Shown here: positions 4,041 through 63,822 of the stretch, piece by piece
Position numbering within the stretch: the stretch's first letter is position 1
Layout: every line of letters begins with the position of its first letter
Source of the DNA: Basidiobolus meristosporus CBS 931.73
Lineage: Eukaryota; Fungi; Basidiobolomycota
Direction of reading: 5' to 3'
Length of the DNA stretch: 64,000 nucleotides
Assembly (NCBI GenBank): GCA_002104905.1
Contig: MCFE01000183.1
Coordinates: 76,812 to 140,811 of the forward strand
Notes under the pieces: model-generated
Told to the model about the DNA's origin: nothing
Seen by the model: only the letters and a program-made list of their open reading frames with translations
Databases searched by the model: none
Made by a program: the position numbers and the translations under genes

Positions 4041-5433
4041 CTGTAAGTATTCAGCTTACATGTAAACCACCCATAGGTCTTTAGATTCTATTTAGCTTAT
4101 TGCCAAGGGATGAAGTTCTCCAAATCACTTCCAATACTCCCTAGAATCTTGCAACAGCACCACCACAAGACCATACTGAAAAGGTACAAATACCATCAGA
4201 AAATCCGCCTCAAGTCCAGTTTTGAAATTTTAGATAGGGGGGCTACCGGGAACTTTCCCATACCATCCTTACCATTAGTTCACCGACTCCCCTCAAGAAT
4301 TTCCATGTCCGATCAAGATGACAATAGCAGAGCATCAAGCAGTCTTCTAGTACTCCGCATCCCTCGCGACTGCCAAAAGCTATGATGGAAGAGGCACTCG
4401 CAGCACTGCATCTGCAAGGGTGGGTGTGGAATGCAAAGCTAAAGACTTTGAAGAATGGCGCCAGAGCAACAAGTTGTTAGGACAACCTCGAAAATACTGG
4501 AGGGTTTTGGGAGGTTGAAAGGAGAGTGGCTGTATGGGGTTTAGCATGAATATTTTGAAGCCAATTTTCAGACCAACCAACCGATCATGGGCTTTGGTAA
4601 AAAGAATCCAAGGGATGGGGATTTATGGGGTAGCTGGCTAATGGTCAGCACCGATTTAGTCGATTGAGTGGATTTTAGCGTAAACCAGATCAAGGGATAC
4701 GGGGTTTTGATTTACTTAATTGTTTACTTATACTGCGGGTCCCTAGATTCTTCCGAACCAGACCGTCATGGCCACATATTCTTGATTGAATCTTGGCTTA
4801 GTTCGGCAACAAGACCCCAAGTACATCTACATGGGGGCCACAACAATGGATACCAACGCCTCCGTTGAGAAAATCCATCCAGGAGAGTGGCACGGCCCTA
4901 TCTGTTGGTCGCCACCCCTTGAACTCAGTCCAGATGCAGGGCCATTGCGACGTATCCCAGACAGTCGCATCTCATGCTAGATTCCTCTCTCAGCCATCCT
5001 TGTCGCCCACCATCTCTGCCCCGACAAGCCCCAGGCAATGCAAGTTCGATTAAGGTTAGACGTTTAGATCAACCCGATTCCTATTTGAACCAGCAGGATG
5101 CAAAACTCCCTGACTCAGGATGCTCGAATCACACTACGCAATCCACGGGACTTGTTGTGTAAATAACTCCATCCACCAATCATCTGGACTGCGGGGGGAA
5201 ATCCGATGCAGGATCAGAAAAACAATTCCGACCACTACAACGTTCGCGGTCACATCTACATCAGTATCCACTTGTTTACTCGAGGCTCCATTGTCAACAA
5301 TTCGAAGGGGCAGTAAATTTTATCTCGATAGAGAGCAGCCTCGATTCCGTACCTTTGCTATCACCCGGTTGACTCTGCGGGAAACCACTGTTACTTGTGC
5401 TTTTGCTCCGGGGGAACTCTTCTCGACGTATCT

Positions 5434-7746: not shown

Positions 7747-8063
7747 ATCCAGCCACTCAACTCTGAGTACTATTGGCGAACGGGGCAACTTGTAAGATAG
7801 CAACATCCCGGAGCGGGGTTGCCATGAAATACTATGTTTGTGTATATAGCCATATGAACGACCACCTCGAAAACCTTCCCTTCTCTACCTATTTATTACC
7901 CCACGCGGCACCCGCTACTCAAATCAAAACCGAATAAATGAACCCCCCCCCCCCACACACACACACGTTTTAGAGCCATTTGGTGTCTACGCAATGAACA
8001 ACGACAAGAAGCAACCCTTTTGTGCAGACGTGGATCCAAGGAAAAGCAGTGCGTTTATTATGC

Positions 8064-9414
8064 TTACGATCCAATGGGGGTTATGTACAAGGGCTTGTCC
8101 TTGTTGCCGTTTATACCTTCTGCTCTAGAGCATACTCCACAAACTAGCGAGGATGAGGTTAAGGTGAATCGGTACATCAGGTGACAACATTTGGGCAAAC
8201 TTACTTCGTCGATGAGAACTGGCCAAGCGCCTATGGAAAGCAAACGGGGATGAGTAAGGGCAGTGGGTATTTGGGGATTGGTGTACGGACCTTCCATGTC
8301 GTGGCCACTGAAGTCGTTCGGGCAACTCTTGATGAAATCTAGAAACTATGACCACAGTTCAAAGGGGGGTTCTCGCAATGTAGGTCAAATCCCGATACCA
8401 ACCAGGTTCCACGTATCTCTGGAGATGGCCTTTCCATGCTTCTCCTGTAAGAATTGAATCCAGACATCGAGATGGGTATATTTTCCTTCGAGAAGGAGCT
8501 GCCACAGCAGAATGGCGATATCGAGTGCTATAGAACCCTCGTGCATTAGTGATGTGCAGGTCAATTCGAGTCATTCAAACCCCGTTACGTACGCAGACTC
8601 TTCTGGTTCTCGCTTCTACTGAATTTAAAGGTGAATTGATAGATCTGCTTGAATTTCTCCTCATCGTTCAGCTCCTCCCTCAGCGCAGGAAGGACGCTCT
8701 TCATCTTTTCCAAATTGTCGCACCTAGATGGGTCCCGGGTTATCTTCGGTCTCTCGCATGTGAGGAAGTACACTATCAGTTACCCCAGAGCTGCCCAACC
8801 GTCAACGAAGCCCTTTCTCTTGAACTCGCACATCCGTTCGGCGCCCAGGTGCCACGCCACTACCAACATCACCACATCGGTAGGATCTACCTCGAGATCG
8901 TTGCATAACTTCTCTGTTCCTTCCACCAGAATGGCGTCTTCGTCGGGATCTTTTGGACCAAAGGGGATGGAAGGCAGTTAAAGTACGACTCGCTTTACGT
9001 CAGTGTGGAACTCACGACGAAACAAACAACCCACCTTTATACCCCTCAAACACATCGCTGAGCTCTTGGTAGTTTATGGGGACGGAGTGATGAGCCCCGT
9101 TGTCCTTGGAAGAGAAAGAATGGCCGAAATACCCATCGACGGCAAGCTGAACATTCCAGTTAAAGGCTTCGAGGGTCTCACGAGCAACCCTCTCACTGTT
9201 CGCCGAAAGAACCCGGAGAAAGAATGAATGAGTGTGTGGGTGGGTGAAAGGGAGAGCTGGTTCTGCTCTAGGTTACCTGGTATTCGTGAACCCAACAAAG
9301 GTCTTTATCTTCTCGCTTTGCTGTGCTCTTCTGGTAAAATTCTACATGGGAGCAGGGGTTGGTAATGGTGGTGGGGATGGCGCCAATGGACAGGGTAACA
9401 AATGAACCTACCAT
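8064..9414 (-). CDS. DCN1: DCN1-like cullin neddylation E3 (UBA-like + PONY domain), multi-exon
   Basis: Spliced pieces EKIKTFVGFT, LEAFNWNVQLAVDGYF, EKFKQIYQFTFKFSRSENQKSL, AISRDTWNL, GAWPVLIDE. Confidence 0.85.
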
Positions 9415-42333: not shown

Positions 42334-43698
42334 ATGACATTGCCGGCAGAACTTGACATCTTGGGACAGCACCCTATGCTTAGAATGATGTACACCAATT
42401 TAAGCTATATCTTCGCCCTAGACGACAGTCCAAACCAGTCTGCCACAGACTCTGTCGTTCAGTCCCTTACGAATGGTCTACAGCGTTTGTCTGAGAGCTT
42501 TCCATGGATAGCGGGACAAGTCGGTAGCACAGGGGCCGACCAGGGTGGTTCCACAGCATTCAAAATCATACCATTCGAATCAATGCCTCCGCTTCAGACA
42601 GCGCACAGGCCAGATCTTTCGATTAAGACCTTCATTGAATCGAATTGGTCGATGCAGATGCTCGATCCAGACGTGTTTGCGCCGCGCTTGAGCCCCCTCG
42701 GTCAAGCCCCTAAGCCGTCTGATCCGGCGCCAGTATTTCTCCTACGGGCGACATTCATCACCGGCGCCGTCGTACTAACGTTTGCGGCAAACCACAGCGC
42801 CATGGATATGACGGGACAGACTATGATGATACGGCTTCTGAGCAGAGCCTGCCATAGTATCCAATTCACCGAAGAAGAGCTGCGTTTGGGGAATAGGGAA
42901 ATAGGGTGCAAAATTGCCTTATTTGAAGACAGGGGGGATCAGGAGCTTAAGGCAGAGATAGCCAGTCAACTAAGCAGGAAGACAGCGGAGACAGAAATCC
43001 CCAAGGTGAATGATCCCCAAGAACCGGCCAAGCTTACTTGGGCATATTTCCAGGCAGATATGTCGTCGCTAGCCGCCATTAAAGCGAAAGCGACTGAATC
43101 GAACCCTAGTTCCAGTTTCGTATCCACAGACGATGCGCTCACCGCATTGATTTGGCAAGCAATCAGTCGTGCGCGTCGCTCTCGTCTCGGCGTATCCACA
43201 AGGCTGTTATTAGCGAGAGCAGTAGATGTGAGAAAGTCGATGGGCATTTCCGAAAGGTATCCGGGTATGATGCAGAACATGGCGTTTAACAACTTGACTA
43301 TTGAAGAGGTTTTAGAGATGCCTCTTGGTGCCGTCGCAGCTCAATTACGAAATAAGCTGGACCCTAACAACCTTGGACATGCAATGCGGGTAATCATGAC
43401 CCTGATGAGCCGTCACCCGCACGAGTCGCCTATTTTACCCTATCTCAAGCCATCTCACGATGTCATGATCACCTCTTGGGCGAAGATGGACTGCTACAGT
43501 GACGACTTTGACTTAGGGCTAGGTAAGCCAGAGATTGTACTACGCCCGCGGTTGCCACCTGTTGGCGAGGGATGGGTCAATTTAATGCCCAAGTCAGAGA
43601 AGAGGGGTATTATATTTGGTGTTTGTTTGCGGGAGGCAGATATGATGCTTTTCAAGGCTGATGAGCAGCTTAGGGAGTGTGTTGATTGTATTGCCTAA
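42334..43698 (+). CDS. Trichothecene 3-O-acetyltransferase-like transferase (TRI101/AYT1 family), intronless
   Basis: LDILGQ, GLQRLSESFPWIAGQV, HSAMD (HxxxD), FVSTDDAL, RAVDVR, YPGMMQNM, ITSWAK, DFDLGLGKPE. Confidence 0.9.
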   Translation: MTLPAELDILGQHPMLRMMYTNLSYIFALDDSPNQSATDSVVQSLTNGLQRLSESFPWIAGQVGSTGADQGGSTAFKIIPFESMPPLQTAHRPDLSIKTFIESNWSMQMLDPDVFAPRLSPLGQAPKPSDPAPVFLLRATFITGAVVLTFAANHSAMDMTGQTMMIRLLSRACHSIQFTEEELRLGNREIGCKIALFEDRGDQELKAEIASQLSRKTAETEIPKVNDPQEPAKLTWAYFQADMSSLAAIKAKATESNPSSSFVSTDDALTALIWQAISRARRSRLGVSTRLLLARAVDVRKSMGISERYPGMMQNMAFNNLTIEEVLEMPLGAVAAQLRNKLDPNNLGHAMRVIMTLMSRHPHESPILPYLKPSHDVMITSWAKMDCYSDDFDLGLGKPEIVLRPRLPPVGEGWVNLMPKSEKRGIIFGVCLREADMMLFKADEQLRECVDCIA

Positions 43699-46165: not shown

Positions 46166-47614
46166 CTAGTGCAAGGGAATGCTTCGGGCAAATTGGAAAA
46201 CATTTTTGGGATCGTATTTGTTCTTGATATGAACTAGTCTATCGAAGTTATCCCCATAGTAGATCTTCTTCCAGTCCTTTTCGTCGTTGTCAACGTAGTT
46301 TTGGTAGCCTTGGGGGAAGTCTGGATGAAGCGTATTATAAATTTCATGAAGCCAAGGAAGACGTGTAGCATTGAAGACTCCGATTTGGATGCTAGAAATG
46401 GTATTGCGGTGGACAAAGGAGGTGGCATGGGTCGAGTGTCTGCCAACTTGCCCTCCTTGCATATCAAACATGATGAAGGCCTGATTGTCAACCGATTTCA
46501 TAATGTCATAGACTTTGTCGGCCACTTCTTTGGTCACCGGCTTCACCAAATAACCTGATTTAGCCTTGAAATAGCTCTTGACTGATCTCCGTTGGGTTTT
46601 GGCCAAATCATCAACCGCCATATGGGGTCCGTTGGTAGCAAAATATAGGAACGATTCGGGTAAAGTCATCTTTTGGTTAGTAATCAGCGAGGTCTTGGGG
46701 AGTTTCTCGATAATTTCTTGGAACAATTGTTTTTGCTTCGTTGGATTGCCTGTTAAGATGGTTCCCGATACTCGAATTGCTCCGCCAGGTAAGATATGGA
46801 AAATTCCAGTAACTTCCCTGGGTGGGTTACTAGCAAACCATTCTTGAACCCCAATAAGCACGTCACTGAAGTTCCCTGCGCTAGTAGGATACGTGAGTGA
46901 GAAGACTGGGAACTTGTTAGGTGCGTGGAAATAACGGAATTGGAACTTTGTCACAATGCCGTACGAGCTATGGCCTGCACCCAATAGAGCCCAGAACAAG
47001 TCTTTGTTCTTCTTTTTACTAGCAACAACAACATCCCCGGTAGCGGTAACCACCTCCATGGACTCTACTCTATCCAGCATTAGTCCATGAAGACGACTGT
47101 ACAAACCATAGCCACCACCTAGGGTATGCCCACCAACTCCGATCTCTGGCTCGCTACCATGTGGGAGACCCACATTACGCTCTTTCCACAAGAAGTGCAA
47201 GAGCCTGCCTACCAATTGGCCAGCCTCAACCGAAACAGTACGATTGTTATCATCGAATTTGGTTTCGTGCATGTTGACCAAATCAACGACCATCTTGCCA
47301 TCTTCACCTCCAAGTCCATAGCCCTCATAATCATGACCGCCGCTGCGAGCGACCACCTTCAGGTTGGTTTTGCTGGCACATCTCACTGCAAGCGCTACAT
47401 CGTGAGTGCTTGTAGGGCGTACGATAACGGCTGGAGAAACCTCGGAGAGTCTGTCATTCCAGTTGAATCTTGCCTGGTCGTATCCGGTGTGTCCAGGAAG
47501 GAATACCTTATGGTGAATCTTATGCAAGCATCGGGCAATATCAGCGGAAAGTAGCGATGTGGCCAGACTGCCGGAAGCGGAGAGAAAAAGGAGCAAAGCG
47601 CTAGCTGCTTTCAT
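46166..47614 (-). CDS. Secreted FAD-linked oxidase, berberine-bridge-enzyme/AA7-like, intronless
   Basis: Signal MKAASALLLFLSASGSLA; RSGGHDYEG; GVGGHTLGGGYG; ALLGAG; BBE tail YQNYVD..YYGDNFDRLVHIKNKYDPKNVF. Confidence 0.93.
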   Translation of the reverse strand: MKAASALLLFLSASGSLATSLLSADIARCLHKIHHKVFLPGHTGYDQARFNWNDRLSEVSPAVIVRPTSTHDVALAVRCASKTNLKVVARSGGHDYEGYGLGGEDGKMVVDLVNMHETKFDDNNRTVSVEAGQLVGRLLHFLWKERNVGLPHGSEPEIGVGGHTLGGGYGLYSRLHGLMLDRVESMEVVTATGDVVVASKKKNKDLFWALLGAGHSSYGIVTKFQFRYFHAPNKFPVFSLTYPTSAGNFSDVLIGVQEWFASNPPREVTGIFHILPGGAIRVSGTILTGNPTKQKQLFQEIIEKLPKTSLITNQKMTLPESFLYFATNGPHMAVDDLAKTQRRSVKSYFKAKSGYLVKPVTKEVADKVYDIMKSVDNQAFIMFDMQGGQVGRHSTHATSFVHRNTISSIQIGVFNATRLPWLHEIYNTLHPDFPQGYQNYVDNDEKDWKKIYYGDNFDRLVHIKNKYDPKNVFQFARSIPLH

Positions 47615-49799
47615 GTTGAATTCAGAGTCAGATCGGCTTGATGACTTGTCTTCATACCAGCCGCTCAAGCCGCCGCTTTTATATGCAACATGGACTTGGA
47701 AGGGTATTAGGAAAGCTTTACCGATACTGTAGAGCAGTATCTTCCACCCTCCCCCAAATCAAAGAATATTACCATAAAAGGTATACAGAAGTACATAGTT
47801 ACCAGGATCGCCATCACAAATCTCCGACTACCAAACATCTACAAGAGATCGTGCCAAATGGGGTGGTTGGCGTATGCCAAAATTTACCACGCTTTCCACA
47901 CCATATCGCTCCGACAGTGACCATTCTCATACCTATAAAGTACTGTTGACCAGGCTGGGAGAAGCCGATTTCTATTTGTCGTGGGTAGAAAAAGATGTCA
48001 TCTAGAACTGGGCAACTTCCGAATTAGCTCCTATACAGAAGAGAACAGGTTCATATATTGGGCTCTAGCCTGGACCATTCTATTATTGCTAAGGAAGTTA
48101 CGGGTCGCTTGGTTGAAAGTTCCGGTTGAATCGGGTGCAGTAAAAACTTTGAAACTTTTCGCATTGCTCAAAGAGTGCTAAAGGTTGCGTGGTTATCTGT
48201 TGTTATCCCGACCAACATAAACTGCTTTTTACTGCTGACCTTGATATTTATCATGTCAGATCGAGTTACCCTGCAGGAACATAGCATAACAAATATTTGT
48301 TATCCGTGAGTACCTTTTACAAATCTTAATGTGGGAGAGCATGCAATGACTCTCAGGCGGCTATTTTCGGGGTTATGGACTGAGATTATTTGGCAGTGAA
48401 TAGCACAAAACCAAACCCGGCAAAATGAAGCATGGTCGCTTTTACCATATTTATCAGCGCAGTAAGATCAGGCGTATACCAAATTTATTACACGCGCTCA
48501 AGTAGCATACCTTGAAAATATGGCTACTTGTATTGCATTGGCAAAATAGGCAGTTGAATTTGGGCTCTTCTTAGACGCCTTAAATCCCGACCTCTCCTTG
48601 TGATTAGTAGCTAGCGCTGACAAATATGTTATTATTCTGAGGATAGTAACCTCTATGAAAAATAACCATGATGATCCCATCAAAAGACTGTCACAAAACT
48701 TAAATCCTGCAACTAAGCAGTATTGATGCCATTGTGATACCATGCAAAGAGCATTAAAAAGTTGCACCTCAGATTTCTCAAAAACTTGGTCAAAATCTTT
48801 CATCACAACAATCCATAAGTTACTGTTGTTTGGTTCTCTGCCAATTCTCTCACTTTCTGATCATGGGCACTCAATCACCTCCTACATTTGTGTACATTCA
48901 TTGGCTATTGCCTCTTTTTCACACTTCTTACTTCCTGACTCAACCAATGCTCTTACTTTTCATGCATACAAATTGGTTTATTTCTGTTATATCTTCCATT
49001 GTAACTCAATTACCAGCTGTACTGACCCATGTAAGTCCCTATACCAATGTTAACATTAAGCCTAACCTTGCACTCTATGAGTAATTCCATTAAAATCCTC
49101 CATTCAATAAGTGTTTCTGCTGCCCAGCAACTATATGCGGGTGGCTGAACCAGAATCCGCAGAAGACAACCATCATCAAGGAGTGAGGTGGATCTCGTGG
49201 CAAACAGACACTTTAAATAAGATTGTGTATGCACTAGTCGGGGAATGAGACAATGAATGATAAGTACCCTTAGTTTTTATTGGTAAATACATCTGTCACG
49301 CATTGAACTAGCCAACAAATAGAAAGTCTGCCAAATTCTCCCAATGCGTCCGCTTGTTAAATCTGCAACTGAAATTAGCGAGAAAGGCGCGGATCATGGT
49401 ATGGGTGTATGCACCTGGCGTTGACCACCTTAAAAGCCAGAAGCAATGCATTGATACCACCCGATGTACAAAGTCCACTATTTGGTTGATAAACTAAGGT
49501 AAGAGAAAGCTTCATGATTGAGTTGGAGCAAAGTAAGGTTAGCCTGACTACATTTAACTACTGCAATAGGTGCTAAAATACATTTTTACTGTTGCCGTCT
49601 TAACCCTTTAGACAATTGCTCTGCTTACAAGTAGCATAAGCAACTAATCAATTTATTGACTACTACGTGGCAAAAAAGCTCCACGCGCTTGGTTTTTTCT
49701 CTCATCAGTCTTGAAAGAATTGATGTTACACATCAGCTGTGGATAGCAACCTGCTGACTTTTGTCTCAATTTAGTCTCCCAAATCCGGGATTTTGTGTG

Positions 49800-50444: not shown

Positions 50445-52949
50445 GATAACTATAGATAGATTGCCTGTTACCCTTTTAAAATGTAGCATTTGTTCGAAAA
50501 TTACCGATTACCAACCTTAATAAGATTGTTAGCATTACCGCAGTGATTTCCGTTCGATCATTGAAACTGATTCGATTTGCCTTCATTCTGATGGAGGTAT
50601 AAGCCACGCTGTTGTATTGACTTCATCATCCGATGAACAGGATCCTAAAAAGAGCGCACTGCCCACTTACAGAGGCGAAGTGGCAGGGCTACAGCATTTT
50701 CGGTGGTCCTTGGCACCCAATTACTCAGGTGAGGCGCCTCACCCTTTGCCTCTCGTGCTCTCTGTCTGACCGACTCTTGTAAGCTTTTTTGCAAGTCTTC
50801 GAATGAAAGACTGGCTTCTCTGCACAACTCACTGACGTCTGCCGAGCTTATTGTGACACAGGTTGCGTACCCCCTGAAGCGCAAGTACCGAGCGCCGCAA
50901 TTCTTTAGGGGTCAACTTCATCCAAGGTAGTCGGATAGGGCACGACACTCTTGAAGTTCTCCACTTTCTGGCTGGCTTTACACCTATAGCTTTCGGTGCA
51001 AGTGCATATTGACAATGTGAAAGGATTTACTATGCATTATAGGGGATACATAAGCTCTAATTAAGTCAAATACAGCTTTTACATACAAATGAAATAATGC
51101 AACATAATGATGGTTCATGTGCGTGTAGCGACCATCAGAAACATGGATCTGGATTAATAAACATCCTGAAAGTTCACATATCATGTTATTTATCAACCTA
51201 TATATAATTGCCAATTAGATTTTTCATATTCATACTATAACAAGCAAGCCCCATATAACATACTATATTCTGTGCACTGTACCATCTCTAATAAGAACAC
51301 ATATATACACTGCTTACCCTAAATGATGATAAAGTGTATTGCACCATAAAGAGAGTATTTGAGTATCAAGGATAATTTTCAACTAACATCATTAATTTTA
51401 TCCTTGAATCACAATAATGAGAATGCTTAGGGTAATGTCCTACCTTATGAAGCCATTCTGGATAGCAGGATGAAAGCTGAGATTAAAGAATTATTGCTAG
51501 TTTAAGAATCCTTTGGTCCAGTTGTATTCAGGACTTCCTGGTTAAACAAAGAAACAATAAGGTTTGTTGCAGTGCTGAGATCCAGAATTATTGGCTGCAA
51601 AACTCTACAAGAAAGAGTTGATTATCACATTCTACAGCTTTTACTGAGCCTTTACCAGTAAAGGCACTTTGTGAAAAGGTGCAAGTCATCAAATGACACC
51701 TAAATACCAATAACCCTATAATGCTATCTTTGATTCTGACTGGTTTTGAGTATAGATCCAATCAGCAAAATAGGATTTAATGACACTGGCCTATTTAATT
51801 CTGGGCATCATTTGTCTAAGTACAATTATTTATACCATTTCTTAGTTGTTTATATATCATATATAAAGTCATAATCTTCCAAACTTTGATTAGCTTTTTT
51901 GATATATTGGTGCTATTTTCCTAAGGTAGAAACACTAAGATGATAAATGCTATACAACTTTTCAAAGTATATTGAAATAGTACAGCTTATTTGAATAATA
52001 TGGAATTTCTAGCAATACTGCTATTAAAATTTGGATTGACAATTCTAGCACTATTTTCAATGGTCTCCTCAAGTAATATTTCTACACTAAATTTAAATAT
52101 TACAATCCGTAGGTTATTGATTATTTATATACCAAAGTTTGTTCAAGTTGGATCGAGAGAAACACTATAAACATTGGAATCTAGTTTCCATTACCATCTT
52201 ACAGTTACCATAATTTTTCAACTTGGATCAAGAGAAGCATTGGAATTTAACTTTGAATAAAACTATATACCATTTTGCAGATCCACTTGAGCTAAGAGAT
52301 CTATGCCTGCTTGTCAGCTAAACAGATATTATTGGTGTCAGAATGGATACATCAAATGCGAAATTCCGTGGTAAACTGGTAGGGTAACAGATAGTCAAGC
52401 TGCAATCTCACGCATATTACCTCACCACACCACAATCCAGCATAGAAAGCCAATGCACCCGCTGCTTCAACACGTGGAGTGAATGATGAGACAGCAACTA
52501 TCCTGATCTTACCGAAGCTTGATTTCCTCACCTATGCATTGGAGAAGATGCGCATGCTAACCCACACGCATGGCATGAGCAACATTGTACCATCCGTGTA
52601 TGCGTGTGATTGGTTGTCTTCTACATTATAATGCATGATGAGCGAGCTATACACAGCGATTGACAAACAGCCAACTCATTATTCTTCTCTTTACAATAAA
52701 GATACTGGGACAAATCAAAAAGTGATGTAATATCAACGTTCAATTGCTATGTATCATATCGAGGCAATGCTCATGAGATCACACGTAGACTGTGGCAAAA
52801 TCAACGCTCTAGATACTCCTCATTTAGCTATATATAACACTCCATATCCTGGCTTTTCTGACGCAAATCCCACTCTTTTTAATACAGAATCAAGCAAAGC
52901 GTCCACACAGACTGATTGTAATTTAGATAGGTCCAACAACCACTCAGCA

Positions 52950-53549
52950 ATGGTATATCAAATCAGAATCGTCAAAGATGAAGAAGGAATTAACCAAATC
53001 CAAAGACTTCTTTACACGGTCTACATTGAGGAGGGCAAATGGAAGTTCAACCCTGCCAATCCAGCTGGGATAAGGATTGTGGACCATATGCTAATTGACA
53101 ACCGGGATGATATTGCGACATACTTTGGTGCATTCAGCAACAAGAAACTAATCGGCTGTTGCCGAATCTGTCCAAGACATGAAGGTTTATTTGAGATACA
53201 GAATTACAATAGCAAAACTTTGAACCTACTGAATGCAAAGAACTTGGTGGAGGGTTCAAGGAGTGCGGTACTACCTGAGTATAGACAGCATGGAGTATTT
53301 CGTACTATGTTTCATGAAGTTCTCCAATACTGCTATCAACGAGATCTTTTGCTGTTTGTTTCTACCAGTTCAAATGAACTTCGACGTATTTTTCGAATTA
53401 TCGACTTTCCAATTGTTGAGGATTTCACATTCAAATATGAATCCCACGACCCAAAAGAGTGCCAACTCTTTGTGGCTAAATCCCGATCGGACTTACTGCA
53501 TAGTATTTCAAAACTTTGCCCCACAGTTCCACTACATAGTCATCTCTAA
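52950..53549 (+). CDS. LuxI/FeeM-like GNAT-fold N-acyltransferase (199 aa from ATG 52950), intronless
   Basis: RLLYTVYIEEGKW, IDNRDD, YFGAF..LIGCCRICP, LVEGSRSAVLPEYR; motif order and spacing follow autoinducer-synthase-fold proteins. Confidence 0.7.
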   Translation: MVYQIRIVKDEEGINQIQRLLYTVYIEEGKWKFNPANPAGIRIVDHMLIDNRDDIATYFGAFSNKKLIGCCRICPRHEGLFEIQNYNSKTLNLLNAKNLVEGSRSAVLPEYRQHGVFRTMFHEVLQYCYQRDLLLFVSTSSNELRRIFRIIDFPIVEDFTFKYESHDPKECQLFVAKSRSDLLHSISKLCPTVPLHSHL

Positions 53550-55366
53550 GCTTGATAAACTAACCTAACTGATATTTTATTCTATTTTATAATGTTCTAT
53601 CTTTGATTAATGATTAATTGCACCCTATTTTATATTAACCTAACTGTTGAACAATACATGGTTATACAACTTACATATTATCCTAGTTTTGATCTGTGTA
53701 CGCATTTAATGAGGTCCTGATATTATCCTGCTCCACTATTTAGCATTCATACATATGATTTTCTATCAATTAAAATATCATAAAGCAAATTAACAAGCAC
53801 AAGAATGACTATCTAATATAAAGCTAACTTGTAGGCTCATCTACTATGGCTAAAATTTAAGTACATTAGACTTGTTATCTTTTGTTGTGTTAGATCATTC
53901 TTAGCATGCTACACTCCAGATAGTTCTTGAGCATTTCAGAGCATTCATCATTTTTCTGTTGCTTGTTCTATGCTGAACTTTACAATTATCTTTAATCAAC
54001 TTATAGTACATTACATTTTGTTCTGCTTCTATACTTCTCCATACCTTACCCTATCTGACTCTCTTGATAGAAATATTGGAAAATACAAATACACTGTAGT
54101 AAATGATATTTGAGCTATTTCTTGATATGCATTTTTGCCAGATTTGACAAAATTAACTTAATGATCAGAGCATAATCAAGTGATTTGAAATGATGTGGCA
54201 TGCTCATATTGTGGTGGATTTTGTAATTGCACCAAAATGCTTACCAAATTTGGTTCTTAGATCATAGACTACAGATCTAAAAGAAATATCACTAAATTAC
54301 TAGTCAGGATTTAATTGCAATATTTTGCCAATATCATCAGGTATCTAGCCCATGTAGTATCTCCAAGCTATGCAAACCACCTCTGGCTTAGCACACATGC
54401 TCTTGATACCTCCTCTAAGCACAATACATATGTTTGCTCTGAATTATCATATAAATGTATAGCCACCTCCTTTACACCTAAGAGATCATCAAGTGAAAGC
54501 CATTGAGTTTATTTGCTCACCTAATCATTTCTAACATCCTCCAAACCCTAACTTTGAGTTGTGTGCCCTAAGCTGCTGCTATATGGTCTATCTACTACCA
54601 TTATTACTTTGATTTTTCCCTTGGCCAAAAAGCTGGATAGAACTAGAAACTAAGTCTGGAAGGCAACAATGAATGTGGTGATACAGGAAATGGGCCGTTA
54701 AGACTTATCATAGCATTAAGACTTCTTCTTCAGCACCTTCAGGAGGGCATTTCATCTCACATAACAGTATCCCAAAGTTGGAACCCTATTGGATTCTCAG
54801 CTGGCATTTCTGCAGGTATTTTGGCAGAATATTGTTGGATTGGGGAGGATAATTATCACTAAAGGGTGGAACCTTTATTTATATCATAAATAATGAACCA
54901 AGTTTGAATATGAATATCTGAGATGCAGAAAGCATACAAGATAAACTTGGACTTTGCTGTTTCCTAAATATCCTCAATTTCATAGTCTTGAGGAGAATAT
55001 AGCAATACTGCATATTCACCATGGAGTTTCTTAGAGGAAGTTTGTGACTTGAAGGGAAGGACAATTCTTCAACAAGCTAGTATATCTTTTGAGAAGTTCT
55101 ATTCCCAGAGAGAATGGTACAAAGAGTGGAAATTCTAAATGATGTTTGAACACTGTGCTCTGAAAGCTTCCCAATCCAGCATATTCTTGACTTCTTCTGC
55201 AAAATCTTCAACAATATCCTTTTCAAGAATAACCTCTAAGAGATCCATGGCAGTGTACAGAATGCATATAATATTAGGTATATGAATACCTTGATCCTTG
55301 GGGTGTTTTCTTTGTTCTAGTATTGCAAGATAAGAGTTTGGGGGATGATAATCACCAAATTGTTAA

Positions 55367-55510
55367 GGGAGACAGTCACCTACAGGTGAAATCTTTATTT
55401 CAACTGAAGCAAAGAAGCCAGCTCTACTGTGGTAGCTTTAATAGAAGAGTGTGTAGCTGAGGGGAATCTGTAGGTAAATCTATAAGGAGAGACAATGATT
55501 CTTCAGTGCT
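55367..55510 (-). mobile_element. Old diverged 3' terminus of the telomeric LINE (type A)
   Basis: gggAGACAGTCACCtacaGGTGAAATC..GAAGCCAGC..GTGTAGCTGAGGGGAAT, diverged from 56394-56530. Confidence 0.85.
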
Positions 55511-56117
55511 TGTTGTATCCAAAAGAAAAGTGTAATAAAATGTTTGAATGAGTTAACTGAGCCTAAGTGACAACTAAGTGCAGAATCTTAGAATTGTCAA
55601 GAGTGACAGAAATATTAGCAGGGAGGTTCTGGTCTAACATTTGTGTTATATAGAGCTGTGTTGGGCTATAAAGGCAACAGAGTAGGTTTGCTATGCAGGC
55701 TAGGCTTAGTGTTCTTGAGAGTGCTAGATATGCTAAGCTTGGGAAGAAATTAGAATGGATTTGTTGAATTCCTAATTTTGTTGAGACATGCACTAAACCA
55801 AAATGTTCAGTAAACTTTATTTATACTTTTCTGATTGAGTTGCATTAGTAAGCGCCAAGAGACTGGACTAATTGAAATCTGTTGGGGTGTTGATAGGTGC
55901 ATAAGATAGATGAAAAAATGCATCATTAATCAGCTGATGTCTTGGCAACTGCTAAGTAGTTGGATAAATCTCAGATGACTAATCACTTGGAAAGGATTAG
56001 CAGATCAGTTGAGGACATAATGTCCACATGTAAATTGATCAGGTGTGACAGCTAAATATTGATTCTGAGAAGTGATAAAATAAACCATAACAGGGATTAG
56101 TTATGCTTGGGTTAGGG

Positions 56118-56301
56118 AAAATCAGTTAGGGTACTATATTTTCTAACAGAGTGATATTGGCCAATTTTTAAATGTTGATGCACAACAGTGCTCAAGAAAC
56201 AGTTCAGTGAGAAAAGGGGTAGCAAGAGAGGCAAGAATGACTTGTGAACAACATTAATGAGGGGAATGTGATAAGGATTGATATTTATCATAAAGGGAGT
56301 G
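56118..56301 (-). mobile_element. Short fragment of the telomeric LINE ORF2 C-terminus with a different 3' end
   Basis: 56186-56301 matches 56530-56642. The proximal ~70 bp differ and are bounded by GGGTTAGGG (56109) and TTAGGG (56126). Confidence 0.75.
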
Positions 56302-56304
56302 TTA

Positions 56305-56382
56305 GGGGGGAGGAAAGTCACCAAGTGGTGAAATCTTTATTTACTTATGACAAGTATCTAAAGAAGCCAAGTTAATCTGAAG
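56305..56382 (-). mobile_element. Truncated noncoding partner element (type B terminus)
   Basis: G6-aggaaaGTCACCaagtGGTGAAATC..AAGAAGCCAAGTTAATCTGAAGT, near-identical to 60987-61052. Confidence 0.85.
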
Positions 56383-56447
56383 TTAGGGGGGGGAGACAGT
56401 CACCAACAGGTGAAATCTTTATTTCAGTTGAAACAAAGAAGCCAGCG

Positions 56448-59216
56448 CTACTGTTGTAGCTTTGATACAAGAGTGTGTAGCTGAGGGGAATTTGTAGGTA
56501 AGTTAATAAGAAGTGATGATAGTTCTTCAGTGCTCAAGACACTGTTCAGTGGGAAGGGGGGTAGCAAGAGAGGTAAGAATGACTTGTGAACAACATTAAT
56601 GAGGGGAATGTGATAAGGATTGATATTCATCATAAAGGGAGTGTGCTGCTGCAGATATTGCTGCCAAAGGTCTGTCAAGTACTTCAGGTAGGCCAGCTTG
56701 GGTTTTTCTGACTGCAGAATATAGTGAGCAAACTTCTTGACTTCAGGATCTCCAAGTATAGTTCTCCAGCAGGAGTCAGGTGTTGTGTGGTGTGTTCTCT
56801 TCCAGGCCGTAATCAGTGGGTTGTTGCAGTTGTGAAGTCTGAGGTATAATCTGGTTCTAAGGTAGAGAAGTCTGATCTTATGGGGCATAAACCCAAAAGC
56901 ACCAAGAATAGCATGTCTGTAGGGGCATTCAGGCAAATGAGGCACCAAGGAGGTAATGCACCATACTGCAAACTTGTCAAGCTTAGTGCAGTCTCTAGAA
57001 GTAAGAGAGAGAAGTGGTAAGCCAAATTCCAGGACAGGGAAGACAAACTGCTTGAGTAGAAGGAGGCAGCTGGGAGCTGAAGTTGTAGGAGGAGTAACAG
57101 CCAGTAGCTTGTGGAGTGCCTGTCTTGCCAGGATAATTCTCTTCTTCTGGTGTGCTCCAGAGTCTAGTCCAGTAGGAAGGAAAGGAAAGCTAAGATATGT
57201 AGCAGAAACCTGAGCAGGTAGAGTGGAGTTCTCCAAGTTGATGGGAGAGCCCAAAGGTACTGTCTTTGCAATGGAAAGCTGGAGATTATTCTTCTGCAGA
57301 TACTGGTGGATGGTCTGGGAGTCTTGTTGCACATTGGAGGAGGATATTCTGATGTCATCAGCAAAGAGAGTAACCAGGCAGTCAGCTGAGAGTCTTGGGA
57401 AATCATTCAGGAAGATGGCAAACAGTATAGGACCAAGCACAGAGCCTTGAACCACTCCATTAGGAACTGAGAAAACAGCTGATTGCTCACTTGGGTGCAG
57501 AATTCTTGCTTGTGGATCCAGAAACAGAGACCTGACAAGGAGGGTGAGAGAGGTACTGGAGAAGCATTGCAACTTGGACCAAAGCAGATTTCTGTCAACT
57601 GAATCAAAGGCCTTAGTAATATCAAACAGAACAGAGGGATACTTGCACTGGAGAGAGTGATCTTGGCTAAGTATGACTGCATATTCCAAGGAGAGGCCAG
57701 GAACAAAGCCAAACTGTGCAGGATGAAACTTGAGAGAGTCAGAGTAGAGCTCCTGAGCAAGCAGAAGCTCAAACACCTTTCTGCAGGTGGGCAGCAGAGA
57801 TATTGGCCTGTAGGAGCTAGGATCCAGGTGCTTTCCTTTACCCTTGTACAGTGGCAGAACATTTGCAAAGGACCATTCCTCAGGAGTAGAAAGCTGGGCT
57901 GAGCATTGCTGAAACAGTGGAAGCAGAAGTGCAGACATGGCCTTGGTACTAGTCTTCAGAAGCTCATAGGAGATTGTGTCCACACCTGGAGCAGTAGAGT
58001 TGGGAAGCCTCTTGAGCACATTATGGATTCTCCTTTGATCAAGTGCAAGTGGGATGGGCAGAGTCTTGAAGTCAGGATGAAAGCCAGGAGTTGAGTACTG
58101 CTTTGTAGAGAAGAAGATGTTAGCCAGCTGTTCTGTTGAAGGTAACTTCCTGGAAGAGGGCCTCATTGCCCTGTAGAGTCTTGATACTGTTCTTGTTATA
58201 GAGTTGGAAGATTGCAGAGGCAAGGAACTCATAATATGATCCCAGAGCTGAGTATGCAGAGTGTGGTGAATTGCCTTGGAGTGGTGTATTGCTGTCAGGA
58301 GGAGTTTCTCTGTTTTTGGGTTAGGGAAGCTCAGGTAGCTTTGTTGCAGGGCTGAAACAATGGATTCCCATTTTCTTGAGGTAACAGCAGTAGTCTTGCA
58401 TGGCAGTGAGAGGGAGGCAGACACCAGAATAAGATGCTTCACAAAGAGCCAGGCAAAGTTGAGATCATCTGGCAGAGAAAGTAGCAAACTGGCAAGCTTC
58501 AAGTAGTTCCCAAAGTCTTTCTTCTGATTCTTGGTAGCTTTGTGGGTGAGCACAGTAAGTTTTGGCAGCTTCTTCTTCACAACTGGTTGCATAGAAAGGG
58601 ACCAGGCTGGGTGGTCAGAGGCTCTCAAGGATCCTAGCTCAGCTCCAGAGAATTGCTTAACTTCATTCACAAAGTAGAGGGCAGCAGCAGAAGGGCAGAT
58701 CCAGTCAACACATCTTTTCTCAGATTGAGCACCTAGTGGTAGCAGGTGGCTTTCTCTCAGGAAGTTCAGTAGGAATGTACACCTTGGCTTCATTCTTGCA
58801 GTCAGAGTAGTCTTGTTCTCAGGATGGGGAATGTTGAGATCTCCAAGCAAGATAACAGGTGTTGATATAGATTGTTGGTATTGCTGAACCTTCTGGCATA
58901 TAACTTGCACTTCCTGAAGGGCTAGACTTGGAGGCAGATAGCAGAGCACCAGACTGATAGTTGGCAACTGGAGAGCAGCACAGTAAGGGGAGTAAAGAGG
59001 AACACAGAGCTGAGGAGTATTGATGGTAGAAGAGATGAAGCAGATAGAGGAGGTATTCTTTGTTCTAGGAGTAGAAAAGCAATATAGATTAGTCAAAAGT
59101 ATAGAGGGTAGCTGGACATCAATCAAACACAGGAGGGAAAATCTTGAAAGAAGTCTCTCTAGAGTTGGTCTTGATGGCTGTATGCTGTTGCAGTTAAGCA
59201 ACAGAACTTCAGGTAG
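56448..59216 (-). CDS. LINE ORF2: APE/EEP endonuclease + reverse transcriptase
   Basis: EVLLLNCNS, CYLPP, LLGDLN, VDWI, SDH; YRPISLL, QFGF, DITKAFDSV, GVVQGSVLGP, FADD, KT. No RNase H or CCHC seen. The frame opens directly after the ORF1 stop. Confidence 0.95.
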   Translation of the reverse strand, partial: LPEVLLLNCNSIQPSRPTLERLLSRFSLLCLIDVQLPSILLTNLYCFSTPRTKNTSSICFISSTINTPQLCVPLYSPYCAALQLPTISLVLCYLPPSLALQEVQVICQKVQQYQQSISTPVILLGDLNIPHPENKTTLTARMKPRCTFLLNFLRESHLLPLGAQSEKRCVDWICPSAAALYFVNEVKQFSGAELGSLRASDHPAWSLSMQPVVKKKLPKLTVLTHKATKNQKKDFGNYLKLASLLLSLPDDLNFAWLFVKHLILVSASLSLPCKTTAVTSRKWESIVSALQQSYLSFPNPKTEKLLLTAIHHSKAIHHTLHTQLWDHIMSSLPLQSSNSITRTVSRLYRAMRPSSRKLPSTEQLANIFFSTKQYSTPGFHPDFKTLPIPLALDQRRIHNVLKRLPNSTAPGVDTISYELLKTSTKAMSALLLPLFQQCSAQLSTPEEWSFANVLPLYKGKGKHLDPSSYRPISLLPTCRKVFELLLAQELYSDSLKFHPAQFGFVPGLSLEYAVILSQDHSLQCKYPSVLFDITKAFDSVDRNLLWSKLQCFSSTSLTLLVRSLFLDPQARILHPSEQSAVFSVPNGVVQGSVLGPILFAIFLNDFPRLSADCLVTLFADDIRISSSNVQQDSQTIHQYLQKNNLQLSIAKTVPLGSPINLENSTLPAQVSATYLSFPFLPTGLDSGAHQKKRIILARQALHKLLAVTPPTTSAPSCLLLLKQFVFPVLEFGLPLLSLTSRDCTKLDKFAVWCITSLVPHLPECPYRHAILGAFGFMPHKIRLLYLRTRLYLRLHNCNNPLITAWKRTHHTTPDSCWRTILGDPEVKKFAHYILQSEKPKLAYLKYLTDLWQQYLQQHTPFMMNINPYHIPLINVVHKSFLPLLLPPFPLNSVLSTEELSSLLINLPTNSPQLHTLVSKLQQ

Positions 59217-60726
59217 TCAGGCAGAGGTTGTAGCTTCTTCAGAGGCAGCATTAACAATGTGACCTGCAGAGTCCCAGAGCTCTTCAAATGGTGCATCACT
59301 TAAGTCAGCAAGGAGGGAAATGGCATGGTTCTTGAGGAAGTATGCCACATCATAGGAGGGGGCTTGTCTCTTGATGGCAGCAAAGAAAGACAGAATGGCA
59401 ACATGGGCTGGAGGCTTGTTGAACAGTAGAGAGTCAGAGGATTCAGATTCTTCAGGCACTATCTTGAAGTCAGTTTTCAGCCAGTTAAGGTTCTTCTCCA
59501 CAAAGGCAACAAATGGGTCAGCAATGTTTTGGTCTAGGATAACCTCCAGAATCTTCCCTTTTCTCCAGGCCAGGTTGACAATTCTTGAGAGCTGAATATT
59601 GCATGCCTTGAGTGCTTTCCTGATGTTGGAAATGGGGGTCCAGGGAACTTGCTTCAAGTACACCACAGTCCAGGTAGAAGCTGGTGGTAGGTTTGTTGGG
59701 GGCTTGTAAGTCCTTCTGTGTTGCAATGGGGCTGCAGTAGTCAGATTGGAGTCCACATTCTCAGTAGAAGGTTTTCTTGATGTGTCTTGCTGAATAGTAC
59801 TGGAGCTGGATGTGCTGATAATTCTTGCTAGAACCTTGCCTGCATAAGTCTGAGGTATAGCTGAGGTGACTGTAGAGGTGGTGGCAGCTGGTGCAGGTGG
59901 AGAGGCAGAGACTGAAGCAGGAACTGAGGTCACCTGGGAGAAGGCAGTAGAAGCAGGTTTTCTGGGAGGAACAGAGTTCACTATCCAGTTGTTCTGTAAA
60001 ACACTGGAGTAGCTTTTCTGTGGAACAGGATCTTGCTCTTGAACAGGAACAGAAGCAGGAGGCTGGGGCTGAGCAGTAGTGGTAAGGCAGTGGCACTCCA
60101 AGGAAGCTTTTTGCAAGGCATCTCTGGCAGTTTTCAGGGCAGTATTGGCTTCATTCTTGAGCTTCTTGCATTGGGCATCCAGTCTCTTGTTTTCAATAGC
60201 CAGGGCAGTATTGGCAGCCTCTAAATCAGCAATTCTCTTCTCAATTGCAAGGAATCTCTGAAGATAATGCATCAGTAGAAGTGCTGGCATCTGGGAGAGC
60301 AGTGGCAGGAATAGAGTCCATTGACAGTGGGCTTCTTGGAGGCAAGGAAAGTGGACTGGCAGATTCAGGCACAAAAGGAGATATCCTGGCAGGAGGAGAA
60401 GGAGTATCCAAGGCAGTAACAGAGGCAATTCTTGTTGGTGAAGCAGCAGCAGGGGAGGCAAGCCTGTTCAGAAACTGGGCAGGAGAGAGTGCTTGAGGAG
60501 AGGGAGTCTTCAGCTTGCCAAGCATGTCTTCCATCAGAGTGATACCAATATTCCTGGTGCATTTGCAGAGAAAAGTAAGCATCCTGAGTCTGCCAGCTCT
60601 TCCATTCCTTCTGATAGTTCCTTTGTTTCCACAGTTGGGGCAAGAAATCTTCTTGACAGACTTGTCAAAGCAATCAAGAACCTTCCTTTCAGGTGTAGTG
60701 GGCTCCTGTTGAGGTTTTGGTGGCAT
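59217..60726 (-). CDS. LINE ORF1 (Zn-ribbon, Pro/Ser linker, coiled coil, RRM-like), broken by a 1-nt frameshift near 60255
   Basis: ATG 60726 MPPKPQQ..CPNCG..CKC; second frame FLAIEKRIADLEAANTALAIENKRL..; WTVVYLKQVPW..IRKAL.. Confidence 0.75.
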
Positions 60727-60963
60727 ATCCAGAGTTTCAGCTTCAAATTTCAATTTTTGAGATTTTTGGGTGATTTTTGATGGGCGGGATCAAAATAAGG
60801 GTTAGGGTTGCGCGCTGTGACTGCTTTTTACGATCGCAAGGTCAGATCCTAGGAAAAATAAAAATAGTTAGTAAAGGTGCTTTAATGGATGGATGGATGG
60901 ATTCGGAGTCAGATTCAATCAAAAAATCAAATCGTTGACTAATTTAAAGAGGAAAAATAAAAA

Positions 60964-60986
60964 TAGGGTTAGGGTTAGGTTAGGGG
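60964..60986 (+). repeat. Interstitial telomeric repeat tract at an element junction
   Basis: TAGGGTTAGGGTTAGGTTAGGGG. Confidence 0.95.
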
Positions 60987-61283
60987 AGAAGTCACCAAGT
61001 GGTGAAATCTTATTACTTATACAAGTATCTAAAGAAGCCAAGTTAATCTGAAGTAATTCCTAGAAAGCTAGTCTGAGAGATATCTTCCTGGTAAGCAGGT
61101 CTGAGAGTTGAGAAGCTGAGTGGTACTATATTCTAGTTAGCTAGGTCTGAGAGAGGTTCCTGGAAAGCCAGGCCTGAGAAGTGAGAATCTGAATATATCT
61201 GAGCTAAGTTATCATGGTTTGCGGTAGCTGAATTGTGCGAATGGCAGTAGACTGGGAACTGAGAATTCTGGCGATCACTGGCA
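60983..61283 (-). mobile_element. ~300-bp noncoding partner element (type B), internally repetitive
   Basis: Shares the hairpin terminus with type A; four degenerate copies resembling CTRGWAAGCYAGKYCTGAGA; no credible ORF. Confidence 0.75.
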
Positions 61284-61286
61284 TTA

Positions 61287-63331
61287 GGGGGGAGACAGTC
61301 ACCAACAGGTGAAATCTTTATTTCAGTTGAAACAAAGAAGCCAGCGCTACTGTTGTAGCTTTGATACAAGAGTGTGTAGCTGAGGGGAATTTGTAGGTAA
61401 GTTAATAAGAAGTGATGATAGTTCTTCAGTGCTCAAGACACTGTTGAGTGGGCAAGGGGGGTAGCAAGAGAGGTAAGAATGACTTGTGAACAACATTAAT
61501 GAGGGGAATGTGATAAGGATTGATATTCATCATAAAGGGAGTGTGCTGCTGCAGATATTGCTGCCAAAGGTCTGTCAAGTACTTCAGGTAGGCCAGCTTG
61601 GGTTTTTCTGACTGCAGAATAAATTCAGCAAACTTCCTGACTTCAGGATCTCCAAGTATAGTTCTCCAGCAGGAGCCAGGTGTTGTGTGGTGTGTTCTCT
61701 TCCAGGCCTTAATCAGTGGGTTGTTGCAGTTGTGAAGTCTGAGGTATAATCTGGTTCTAAGGTAGAGAAGTCTGATCTTATAGGGCATAAACCCAAAAGC
61801 ACCAAGAATAGCATGTCTGTAGGGGCATTCAGGCAAATGAGGCACCAAGGAGGTAATGCACCATACTGCAAACTTGTCAAGCTTAGTGCAGTCTCTAGAA
61901 GTAAGAGAGAGAAGTGGTAAGCCAAATTCCAGGACAGGGAAGACAAACTGCTTGAGTAGAAGGAGGCAGCTGGGAGCTGAAGTTGTAGGAGGAGTAACAG
62001 CCTAGTAGCTTGTGGAGTGCCTGTCTTGCCAGGATAATTCTCTTCTTCAGGTGTGCTCCAGAGTCTAGTCCAGTAGGAAGGAAAGGAAAGCCAAGATATG
62101 TAGCAGAAACCTGAGCAGGTAGAGTGGAGTTCTCCAAGTTGATGGGAGAGCCCAAAGGTACTGTCTTTGCAATGGAAAGCTGGAGATTATTCTTCTGCAG
62201 ATACTGGTGGATGGTCTGGGAGTCTTGTTGCACATTGGAGGAGGATATTCTGATGTCATCAGCAAAGAGAGTAACCAGGCAGTCAGCTGAGAGTCTTGGG
62301 AAATCATTCAGGAAGATGGCAAACAGTATAGGACCAAGCACAGAGCCTTGAACCACTCCATTAGGAACTGAGAACACAGCTGATTGCTCACTTGGGTGCA
62401 GAATTCTTGCTTGTGGATCCAGAAACAGAGACCTGACAAGGAGGGTGAGAGAGGTACTGGAGAAGCATTGCAACTTGGACCAAAGCAGATTTCTGTCAAC
62501 TGAATCAAAGGCCTTAGTAATATCAAACAGAACAGAGGGATACTTGCACTGGAGAGAGTGATCTTGGCTAAGTATGACTGCATATTCCAAGGAGAGGCCA
62601 GGAACAAAGCCAAACTGTGCAGGATGAAACTTGAGGGAGTCAGAGTAGAGCTCCTGAGCAAGCAGAAGCTCAAACACCTTTCTGCAGGTGGGCAGCAGAG
62701 ATATTGGCCTATAGGAGCTAGGATCCAGGTGCTTTCCTTTACCCTTGTACAGTGGCAGAACATTTGCAAAGGACCATTCCTCTGGAGTAGAAAGCTGGGC
62801 TGAGCATTGCTGAAACAGTGGAAGCAGAAGTGCAGACATGGCCTTGGTACTAGTCTTCAGAAGCTCATAAGAGATTGTGTCCACACCTGGAGCAGTAGAG
62901 TTGGGAAGCCTCTTGAGCACATTATGGATTCTCCTTTGATCAAGTGCAAGTGGGATGGGCAGAGTCTTGAAGTCAGGATGAAAGCCAGGAGTTGAGTACT
63001 GCTTTGTAGAGAAGAAGATGTTAGCCAGCTGTTCTGTTGAAGGTAACTTCCTGGAAGAGGGCCTCATTGCCCTGTAGAGTCTTGATACTGTTCTTGTTAT
63101 AGAGTTGGAAGATTGCAGAGGCAAGGAACTCATAATATAATCCCAGAGCTGAGTATGCAGAGTGTGGTGAATTGCCTTGGAGTGGTGTATGGCTGTCAGG
63201 AGGAGTTTCTCTGTTTTTGGGTTAGGGAAGCTCAGGTAGCTTTGTTGCAGGGCTGAAACAATGGATTCCCATTTTCTTGAGGTAACAGCAGTAGTCTTGC
63301 ATGGCAGTGAGAGGGAGGCAGACACCAGAAT
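61287..63331 (-). mobile_element. 5'-truncated telomeric LINE copy 2 (RT and C-terminus; 1-nt insertion near 62003)
   Basis: Near-identical to 56386-58430; starts after ATTAG-G6 and is truncated at CACCAGAAT. Confidence 0.95.
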
Positions 63332-63339
63332 CAGATTTA

Positions 63340-63822
63340 GGGGGGGGGAGACAGTCACCAACAGGTGAAATCTTTATTTCAGTTGAAACAAAGAAGCCAG
63401 CGCTACTGTTGTAGCTTTGACACAAGAGTGTGTAGCTGAGGGGAATTTGTAGGTAAGTTAATTAGAAGTGATGATAGTTCTTCAGTGCTCAAGACACTGT
63501 TCAGTGGGAAGGGGGGTAGCAAGAGAGGTAAGAATGACTTGTGAACAACATTAATGAGGGGAATGTGATAAGGATTGATATTCATCATAAAGGGTGTGTG
63601 CTGCTGCAGATATTGCTGCCAAAGGTCTGTCAAGTACTTCAGGTAGGCCAGCTTGGGTTTTTCTGACTGCAGAATATATTGAGCAAACTTCTTGACTTCA
63701 GGATCTCCAAGTATAGTTCTCCAGCAGGAGCCAGGTGTAGTGTGGTGTGTTCTCTTCCAAGCCTTAATCAGTGGGTTGTTGCAGTTGTGAAGTCTGAGGT
63801 ATAGTCTGGTTCTAAGGTAGAG
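63340..63822 (-). mobile_element. 5'-truncated telomeric LINE copy 3, capped by the telomere
   Basis: Near-identical to 56386-56869; starts after TTTAG-G9. Confidence 0.95.

Follow-up and report, generated by a model that had tools for sequence, protein, structure and literature searches.

A four-copy subtelomeric gene family of probable bacterial ancestry encoding a predicted FeeM-family N-acyltransferase in the fungus Basidiobolus meristosporus

Close to one chromosome end of the fungus Basidiobolus meristosporus CBS 931.73 lies an intronless gene of 199 codons that we consider likely to be a functional gene of bacterial ancestry, encoding a FeeM-family N-acyltransferase, that is, a member of a branch of the GNAT superfamily with the LuxI fold. 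It occupies positions 52950-53549 (plus strand, stop codon included) of the window, by which we mean the whole stretch of 64,000 nucleotides of contig MCFE01000183.1 that was analysed, and it belongs to a four-copy subtelomeric family rather than being a single gene.

Synthases of N-acyl amino acids and of AHLs are viewed as enzymes of bacteria and as dependent on type-II acyl-ACP. This dependence on acyl-ACP has been offered as the reason why eukaryotes lack such lipids (PMC11631085). If the reading given here is true, a selected, multi-copy family member in a gut fungus would mean that N-acyl chemistry is transferable into a eukaryote, and would provide a specific candidate for lipid signals exchanged between fungus and bacteria, or between fungus and host, in the herptile gut, while the locus illustrates how a gene of probable horizontal origin turns into a subtelomeric family. 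The analysis supports the view that a eukaryotic, multi-copy subtelomeric member of the FeeM/N-acyl synthase family is new, in a fungus already known for massive horizontal gene transfer, and a literature search found no paper on a fungal FeeM-like synthase. The surprise is nonetheless moderate, as large-scale bacterial transfer into CBS 931.73 has been published and the FeeM-domain label for this protein is already in public databases; the importance would rise with an N-acyl product or a cross-kingdom activity.

The reading frame, its family and its predicted fold

The 199-residue frame is uninterrupted in the ORF list and its translation, with the motifs YTVYIEEGKW (residues 22-31), DNRD (50-53), GCCRICP (69-75) and LVEGSRSAV (99-107). 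A preliminary description, made from the letters of the window, had quoted this frame with its four motifs and called the gene intact and intronless; all of this holds, the coding sequence being a single open frame with a start that is conserved among the copies. An in-frame ATG at 52749 would extend the protein to 266 residues, and this longer frame is open both in the window copy and in its near-identical counterpart on contig MCFE01001217.1 (L009). Stop codons break the extension in two paralogues, L001 on MCFE01000234.1 and L007 on MCFE01000046.1, so that the 199-residue start is the conserved one; the public models of the paralogues begin there too, and the 266-residue alternative was rejected. 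The 185 bp immediately upstream (52765-52949, plus strand), which blastn finds to be about 90% conserved relative to L001 and which are non-coding in L001 and L007, are probably a promoter or 5' UTR that travels with the duplicated unit. The protein begins at strand beta-1 with an acidic N-terminus and no presequence, features that mark it as probably cytosolic.

The LuxI motifs YQVF..W, DxxD, GCWRLLP and IVELSRFAV follow one another in the same order as these four and at similar spacing in AHL synthases, and in related N-acyl amino-acid synthases, of about 190-210 residues. Conservation within the present family was counted in an alignment of 78 sequences, where D50 and Y86 are invariant and conservation is 90% or higher for W31, N37, C70, R72, E82, E101, R104 and F161; E101 is found in 77 of the 78 sequences, and R104 in 71, with Lys in the remaining 7. 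The window protein retains D50, R72, E101, S103 and R104 together with Y22, Y25, W31, N37, C70, E82, Y86 and F161. When the family profile is aligned to LasI, D50 falls on D47, R72 on R70, E101 on E101, S103 on S103 and R104 on R104, residues which we take, from the LasI, EsaI and FeeM structures, to make up the electrostatic core, to supply the candidate general base and to contact the phosphopantetheine. In the window, the stretch from D50 (LasI D47) through D53 to C70 and R72 (LasI R70) is encoded at 53097-53165, and the codons for E101-G102-S103-R104, aligned to the LasI E101-x-S103-R104 motif, lie at 53250-53261, both on the plus strand. As to the N-terminal Arg/Phe/Trp triad with which LuxI proteins bind SAM, W31 is kept in 77 of 78 sequences, and the LasI alignment stops short of this region. 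The preliminary description had pointed to an Arg that precedes the LuxI-type Arg position by two residues, and R19 is indeed present there, but its column is variable (Ala in 25, Arg in 11 and His in 9 of the 78 sequences), so R19 is not a conserved equivalent of the LuxI arginine.

By profile models the protein is a member of the FeeM/Acetyltransf_5 group and not of the LuxI family. The Pfam model FeeM (PF21926, N-acyl amino acid synthase) matches residues 16-149 far above chance, with 41.7 bits for a cut-off of 27 (E 1.4e-10), and also matches 57 of the 78 relatives, followed by Acetyltransf_5 (PF13444; 30.5 bits against 22.4) and, more weakly though still above threshold, Acetyltransf_1 (28.5 bits). 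The LuxI model, Autoind_synth (PF00765), gave no match to the window protein at E<=1, and among the 78 relatives it matched just four weakly (best E 1.3e-4). The top NCBIfam matches were the OlsB equivalogs NF052555 and NF052554, yet their 23.1 and 22.2 bits lie far under the respective cut-offs of 320 and 350, and TIGR03694, the PEP-CTERM/exosortase-associated acyltransferase, reached 19.3 bits against a subfamily cut-off of 111.95. Searched against PDB sequences, the family profile weakly matched generic GNATs and LuxI proteins, with the small acetyltransferases SACOL1063, PaiA and Naa50 on top, and did not retrieve FeeM itself.

An AlphaFold2 model built from the 78 relatives has a pLDDT of 94.5 and a pTM of 0.90, and its nine best Foldseek matches in the PDB are all TofI, BjaI, LasI, MesI or FeeM, FeeM itself (2G0B) giving TM values of 0.67/0.73. 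In VIA-align, an independent structural comparison with representative structures, LasI reaches Z 17.8 over 175 residues, RpaI 17.1 over 179, FeeM 16.9 over 175 and TofI 16.5. Ordinary small GNATs reach Z 15-16.5, but over only about 140 residues. The lead of the LuxI/FeeM proteins in score is modest (Z 17.8-16 versus 16.5-15; Foldseek E 1e-7 versus 1e-6). The feature and shape neighbours in the ESM Atlas fall in FeeM/Acetyltransf_5 clusters that are nearly all bacterial. The LuxI/FeeM fold that the preliminary description had proposed is thereby borne out, LuxI-type AHL synthases and FeeM giving the best matches and the longest alignments, over the full length of the protein.

These data also bear on what kind of enzyme is encoded. 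Were the protein a true LuxI-type AHL synthase, it would use SAM and an acyl donor to make AHL signals by which the fungus might talk to, or jam, gut bacteria. Its top structural matches include LasI, TofI, BjaI, RpaI and MesI, its D/R/E-x-S-R core aligns with that of LasI residue by residue, and the CoA-dependent LuxI enzymes demonstrate that this fold accepts acyl-CoA. We nonetheless hold this reading to be quite improbable, given that the protein passes the FeeM and Acetyltransf_5 models in place of Autoind_synth, that FeeM, which is no AHL synthase, is an equally good structural match (Z 16.9), and that the LuxI-type N-terminal arginine is unconserved in the family. An ordinary GNAT enzyme that transfers acetyl or short acyl groups to a small molecule or a protein, for instance in detoxification, and that has no lipid-amide role, would account for the Acetyltransf_1 match, for the best PDB sequence hits of the profile and for the Z of 15-16.5 obtained with small GNATs. 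We rate it as unlikely, if less so than an AHL synthase: such matches are limited to the C-terminal cofactor half or to the roughly 140 residues noted above, whereas LuxI and FeeM proteins cover 175-179 of the 199 residues; FeeM is the best Pfam model; and the N-terminal Y-x-x-Y...W and D-x-x-D elements, which the LuxI/FeeM group has in common, are conserved throughout the family. A FeeM-type N-acyltransferase is therefore the reading that we carry forward.

Bacterial relatives and subtelomeric copies

Word-index searches, whether started from the one protein or from the profile, returned Basidiobolus paralogues only, and it was an exhaustive HMMER search of 1.84 billion representative proteins that gave the wider family, with 242 hits at E<=1e-3. 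Sources were looked up for 30 of these 242; most of the hits are unnamed metagenome proteins, for which a bacterial origin is assumed. Two Basidiobolus proteins come first (91% and 89% identity), then a hypothetical protein of Pyxidicoccus caerfyrddinensis (40%, E 3.9e-39), which has orthologues in two Corallococcus species, likewise myxobacteria; further named hits are proteins from Burkholderiales and Gammaproteobacteria MAGs, and the contig of one relative, P0004, carries MutH, BirA and OmpA-type genes. In maximum-likelihood trees, whose backbone is weak, the Basidiobolus copies sit on a long stem as a clade of their own (99/99); its sister group is the Pyxidicoccus/Corallococcus clade, a relation that is moderately supported (88/89). 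The neighbourhood of the myxobacterial genes, with a TPR-CHAT protein, a PhoD phosphatase and a Ser/Thr kinase, offered no biosynthetic hint. The horizontal acquisition from bacteria suggested in the preliminary description thus finds support in the exhaustive search, the source names and the trees, the nearest named relatives outside Basidiobolus being bacterial and the Basidiobolus copies nesting among them.

Two eukaryotic or eukaryote-like occurrences stand beside the Basidiobolus genes. The ascomycete Mariannaea sp. PMI_226 has an intronless member (P0076) within a 1.1-Mb contig, with 25% identity to the window protein and a distant position in the tree, where its sole close relative is one metagenome protein; to judge from this position, it is probably an independent acquisition. 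The second, P0007, is a frameshifted homologue with 39% identity on an 81.7-kb metagenome contig, and groups with Basidiobolus at 93/90. Its site lies at 4249-4822 of locus L010 on contig Ga0590115_0001376 of JGI 3300060285 (L010/L011/L015). Long ORFs are absent from this contig, an NB-ARC/LRR gene of plant type on it matches RPP1 best in the PDB (E 3.6e-29), and Rfam and tRNA scans of the contig were blank. This plant-like contig suggests a second eukaryotic carrier of the Basidiobolus lineage, and its grouping makes a transfer in one simple step less straightforward. Neither the window protein nor P0007 gave a match when metagenomes were scanned. Among the 30 hits of looked-up source there was no further protein from Zoopagomycota, although the libraries may omit other Basidiobolus genomes. 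Taken together, an overwhelmingly bacterial distribution with patchy eukaryotic cases is the pattern expected of horizontal transfer, and the sequence relationships point to a probably single acquisition from a bacterial donor related to the myxobacterial homologues.

The gene lies in a fungal chromosome. Over 20.6 kb the window matches contig MCFE01000183.1 of the CBS 931.73 assembly (GCA_002104905.1) at 100% identity, and fungal genes lie upstream, namely two chitin synthases, VID27, an HSP70 fragment and a PHD-finger protein. Downstream, an AT-rich spacer of about 2.6 kb is followed by a head-to-tail array of telomere-proximal non-LTR (LINE) retrotransposon copies (56186-63822, minus strand), recognised by blastn and by RT-like ORFs, the reverse-transcriptase frames lying within 56448-63361. 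A repeat scan finds about 30 copies of (TTAGGG)n at the end of the window (63821-64000, plus strand). The FeeM-like gene is hence the last non-transposon gene ahead of a real telomere, and its description as subtelomeric and fungal, also made in the preliminary account, is confirmed. Contamination was considered and is excluded, because the gene is contiguous with the chitin synthases and other fungal genes upstream and with the LINE array and TTAGGG repeats at the end of a window that equals the public contig.

After these upstream fungal genes, and 5-10 kb before the FeeM-like gene, lie an intronless gene resembling trichothecene-3-O-acetyltransferase (TRI-like_N/Transferase; 42334-43698, plus strand) and then a BBE-type FAD oxidase gene with an apparent signal peptide (46166-47668, minus strand). 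A conserved biosynthetic cluster comprising these two genes was considered and rejected, as both neighbours are absent beside the other three copies.

Four copies are present in the assembly, three of them intact and one frameshifted. Besides the window copy (L008, on MCFE01000183.1), a coding sequence identical to it sits on MCFE01001217.1 (L009), inside a segmental duplication of 4.6 kb that is 97.6% identical between the two contigs and spans 51537-56116 of the window. The similarity of L001 (protein P0001, on MCFE01000234.1) is confined to 840 bp at 90% nucleotide identity, namely the coding sequence with 185 bp upstream and 55 bp downstream, and that of L007 (P0002, on MCFE01000046.1) extends over about 1.25 kb at 83% identity. 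In L007, a 1-bp deletion shifts the frame near codon 154, and this copy is either a pseudogene or a sequencing error. The public model K493DRAFT_297457 (203 aa; L007 10001-10612) reads through the deletion, leaving its last 50 or so residues out of frame. In each of the four loci, the gene is oriented toward the same LINE array, which lies 0.7-2.9 kb from it. The element itself is 96-99% identical between chromosome ends (56186-63822 of the window, L001, L007 and L009), and at several ends its array fills the interval from the last gene to the TTAGGG repeats. L001 likewise ends in TTAGGG repeats, and in L009 there is also a TTAGGG run in an internal position, at 9876.

Divergence between the window copy and L001 permits an estimate of selection. 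With dN 0.037 and dS 0.274, dN/dS is 0.135; 17 non-synonymous changes stand against 29 synonymous ones, where neutrality predicts 79% to be non-synonymous (p ~1e-9), and all 17 replacements fall in variable columns of the family except for the conservative K162R. The ratio, its significance and the avoidance of conserved columns indicate that the protein has been maintained by purifying selection after duplication.

In base composition, the gene (GC 0.40, GC3 0.39) is like its AT-rich flanks (0.35) and unlike the core genes of the window (GC3 0.50-0.69), and it also differs from the myxobacterial homologues, whose loci have the crowded, overlapping long ORFs expected of high-GC DNA. The transfer is therefore not recent. 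The low GC3 fits either amelioration or weak expression.

Two accounts that would remove either the function or the bacterial origin can be weighed here. The gene might be a decaying passenger, a non-functional relic moved about by subtelomeric segmental duplication and intact in appearance only, and the frameshift in one copy of four, the AT-rich, repeat-rich site and the low GC3 would all suit such a relic. Decay sits poorly, however, with a dN/dS of 0.135 at a dS of 0.27 between two diverged, intact copies, with the retention of every family-conserved residue and with three intact copies, and we give it only a slim probability, comparable to that of an AHL synthase. Still slimmer is the chance that the gene is anciently eukaryotic, passed down vertically and lost nearly everywhere, with no bacterial transfer at all. 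Such descent could draw on the members in Mariannaea sp. and on the plant-like contig, the latter grouping with Basidiobolus, but Mariannaea lies far from Basidiobolus in the tree, with that single metagenome protein as its close relative; no other fungal protein occurs among the 30 hits of looked-up source, the remaining named hits and the Atlas clusters being bacterial; and the gene is intronless within an intron-rich genome. The evidence thus favours a selected gene of bacterial ancestry. Tabima et al. 2020 (PMC7466969) described about 806 mostly intronless candidates for horizontal transfer from bacteria in CBS 931.73, N-acetyltransferase activity being one of their leading GO terms; like those genes, the window gene is intronless, lies amid fungal genes and has a composition near that of its AT-rich flanks. 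The main text of that paper does not name it, and discusses neither the four-copy subtelomeric arrangement nor the FeeM/LuxI-fold identity.

Proposed activity and comparison with known enzymes

As a FeeM-type N-acyltransferase, the enzyme is predicted to bind two substrates, a fatty-acyl thioester and an amine, for example an amino acid. In this scheme Glu101 would serve to activate the amine, Ser103 and Arg104 would hold the phosphopantetheine arm as they do in LasI and FeeM, and the predicted product would be an N-acyl amide lipid. We know of no free type-II acyl-ACP in the fungal cytosol, and because the protein is probably cytosolic, acyl-CoA is proposed as the most likely donor, as for BjaI, RpaI and MesI, which are CoA-dependent relatives of LuxI. 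These three match the AlphaFold2 model as well as the ACP-dependent enzymes do. Among the characterised members of the family, the acyl-ACP of type-II fatty acid synthesis is the donor (PMC11631085), and by analogy with them activity in the fungus would need a donor switch away from acyl-ACP. The product could serve as a signal, an antibiotic or a surfactant in the herptile-gut community of Basidiobolus, and the gene, once acquired, would have ameliorated to the local base composition and been copied among chromosome ends along with its promoter. A bolder version, to which we assign a low probability, holds that the captured synthase makes N-acyl amide or AHL-like molecules acting across kingdoms on gut bacteria or on the lipid-sensing receptors of the host, that subtelomeric amplification diversifies them or raises their dose, and that the FeeM/LuxI fold has been re-tooled from acyl-ACP to acyl-CoA.

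Comparison with characterised systems brings out both likeness and difference. FeeM (PF21926; 2G0B) is a similar-sized single domain with the same fold over about 175 residues and a conserved catalytic Glu, but its identity to the window protein is just about 15% and its host is a bacterium rather than a fungus. The window gene has neither an acyl carrier protein gene next to it nor a fee-like cluster, and the acyl donor of its enzyme is probably other than acyl-ACP. The LuxI-type enzymes (LasI 1RO5, TofI 3P2H, BjaI 5W8C, RpaI 6WN0 and MesI 6WNS) provide the best structural matches, whereas the window family has a signature of its own in C70, E82, Y86, F161-K-Y163 and D167. With OlsB and other PF13444 N-acyltransferases, those of bacterial aminolipids and of gut-microbiome N-acyl amides, the window protein shares the Acetyltransf_5 match, and N-acylation of an amino acid would be the expected common chemistry (PMC11631085), though no OlsA-type O-acyltransferase partner lies nearby.

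Other branches of the family

Several observations concern relatives outside Basidiobolus. In Mariannaea, the gene (8001-8666 of locus L014, on JANFOG010000014.1) adjoins genes for a bacterial-luciferase-like monooxygenase and an amino-acid permease. The ESM Atlas contains a 110-member cluster of proteins of about 250 residues with the FeeM core domain, 55% of them viral (Nucleocytoviricota), and such viruses are a conceivable vehicle for carrying the FeeM family into eukaryotes; a scan of viral contigs with close relatives found nothing.

In one well-supported bacterial sister clade within the family (100/99), a FeeM-like domain lies N-terminal to PAS_4-HisKA-HATPase_c(-REC) kinases or to PAS_4-GerE regulators with a LuxR-type HTH, the fused members being P0006, P0009 (L012/L013), P0013, P0014, P0019, P0029, P0036, P0044, P0045 and P0047. 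From their domain order these may be synthase-sensor fusions, a type for which a literature search found no paper. P0004, moreover, adjoins a GerE-type regulator at one locus, and together the fusions and this neighbour hint at signalling roles in the wider family, in a clade other than that of Basidiobolus.
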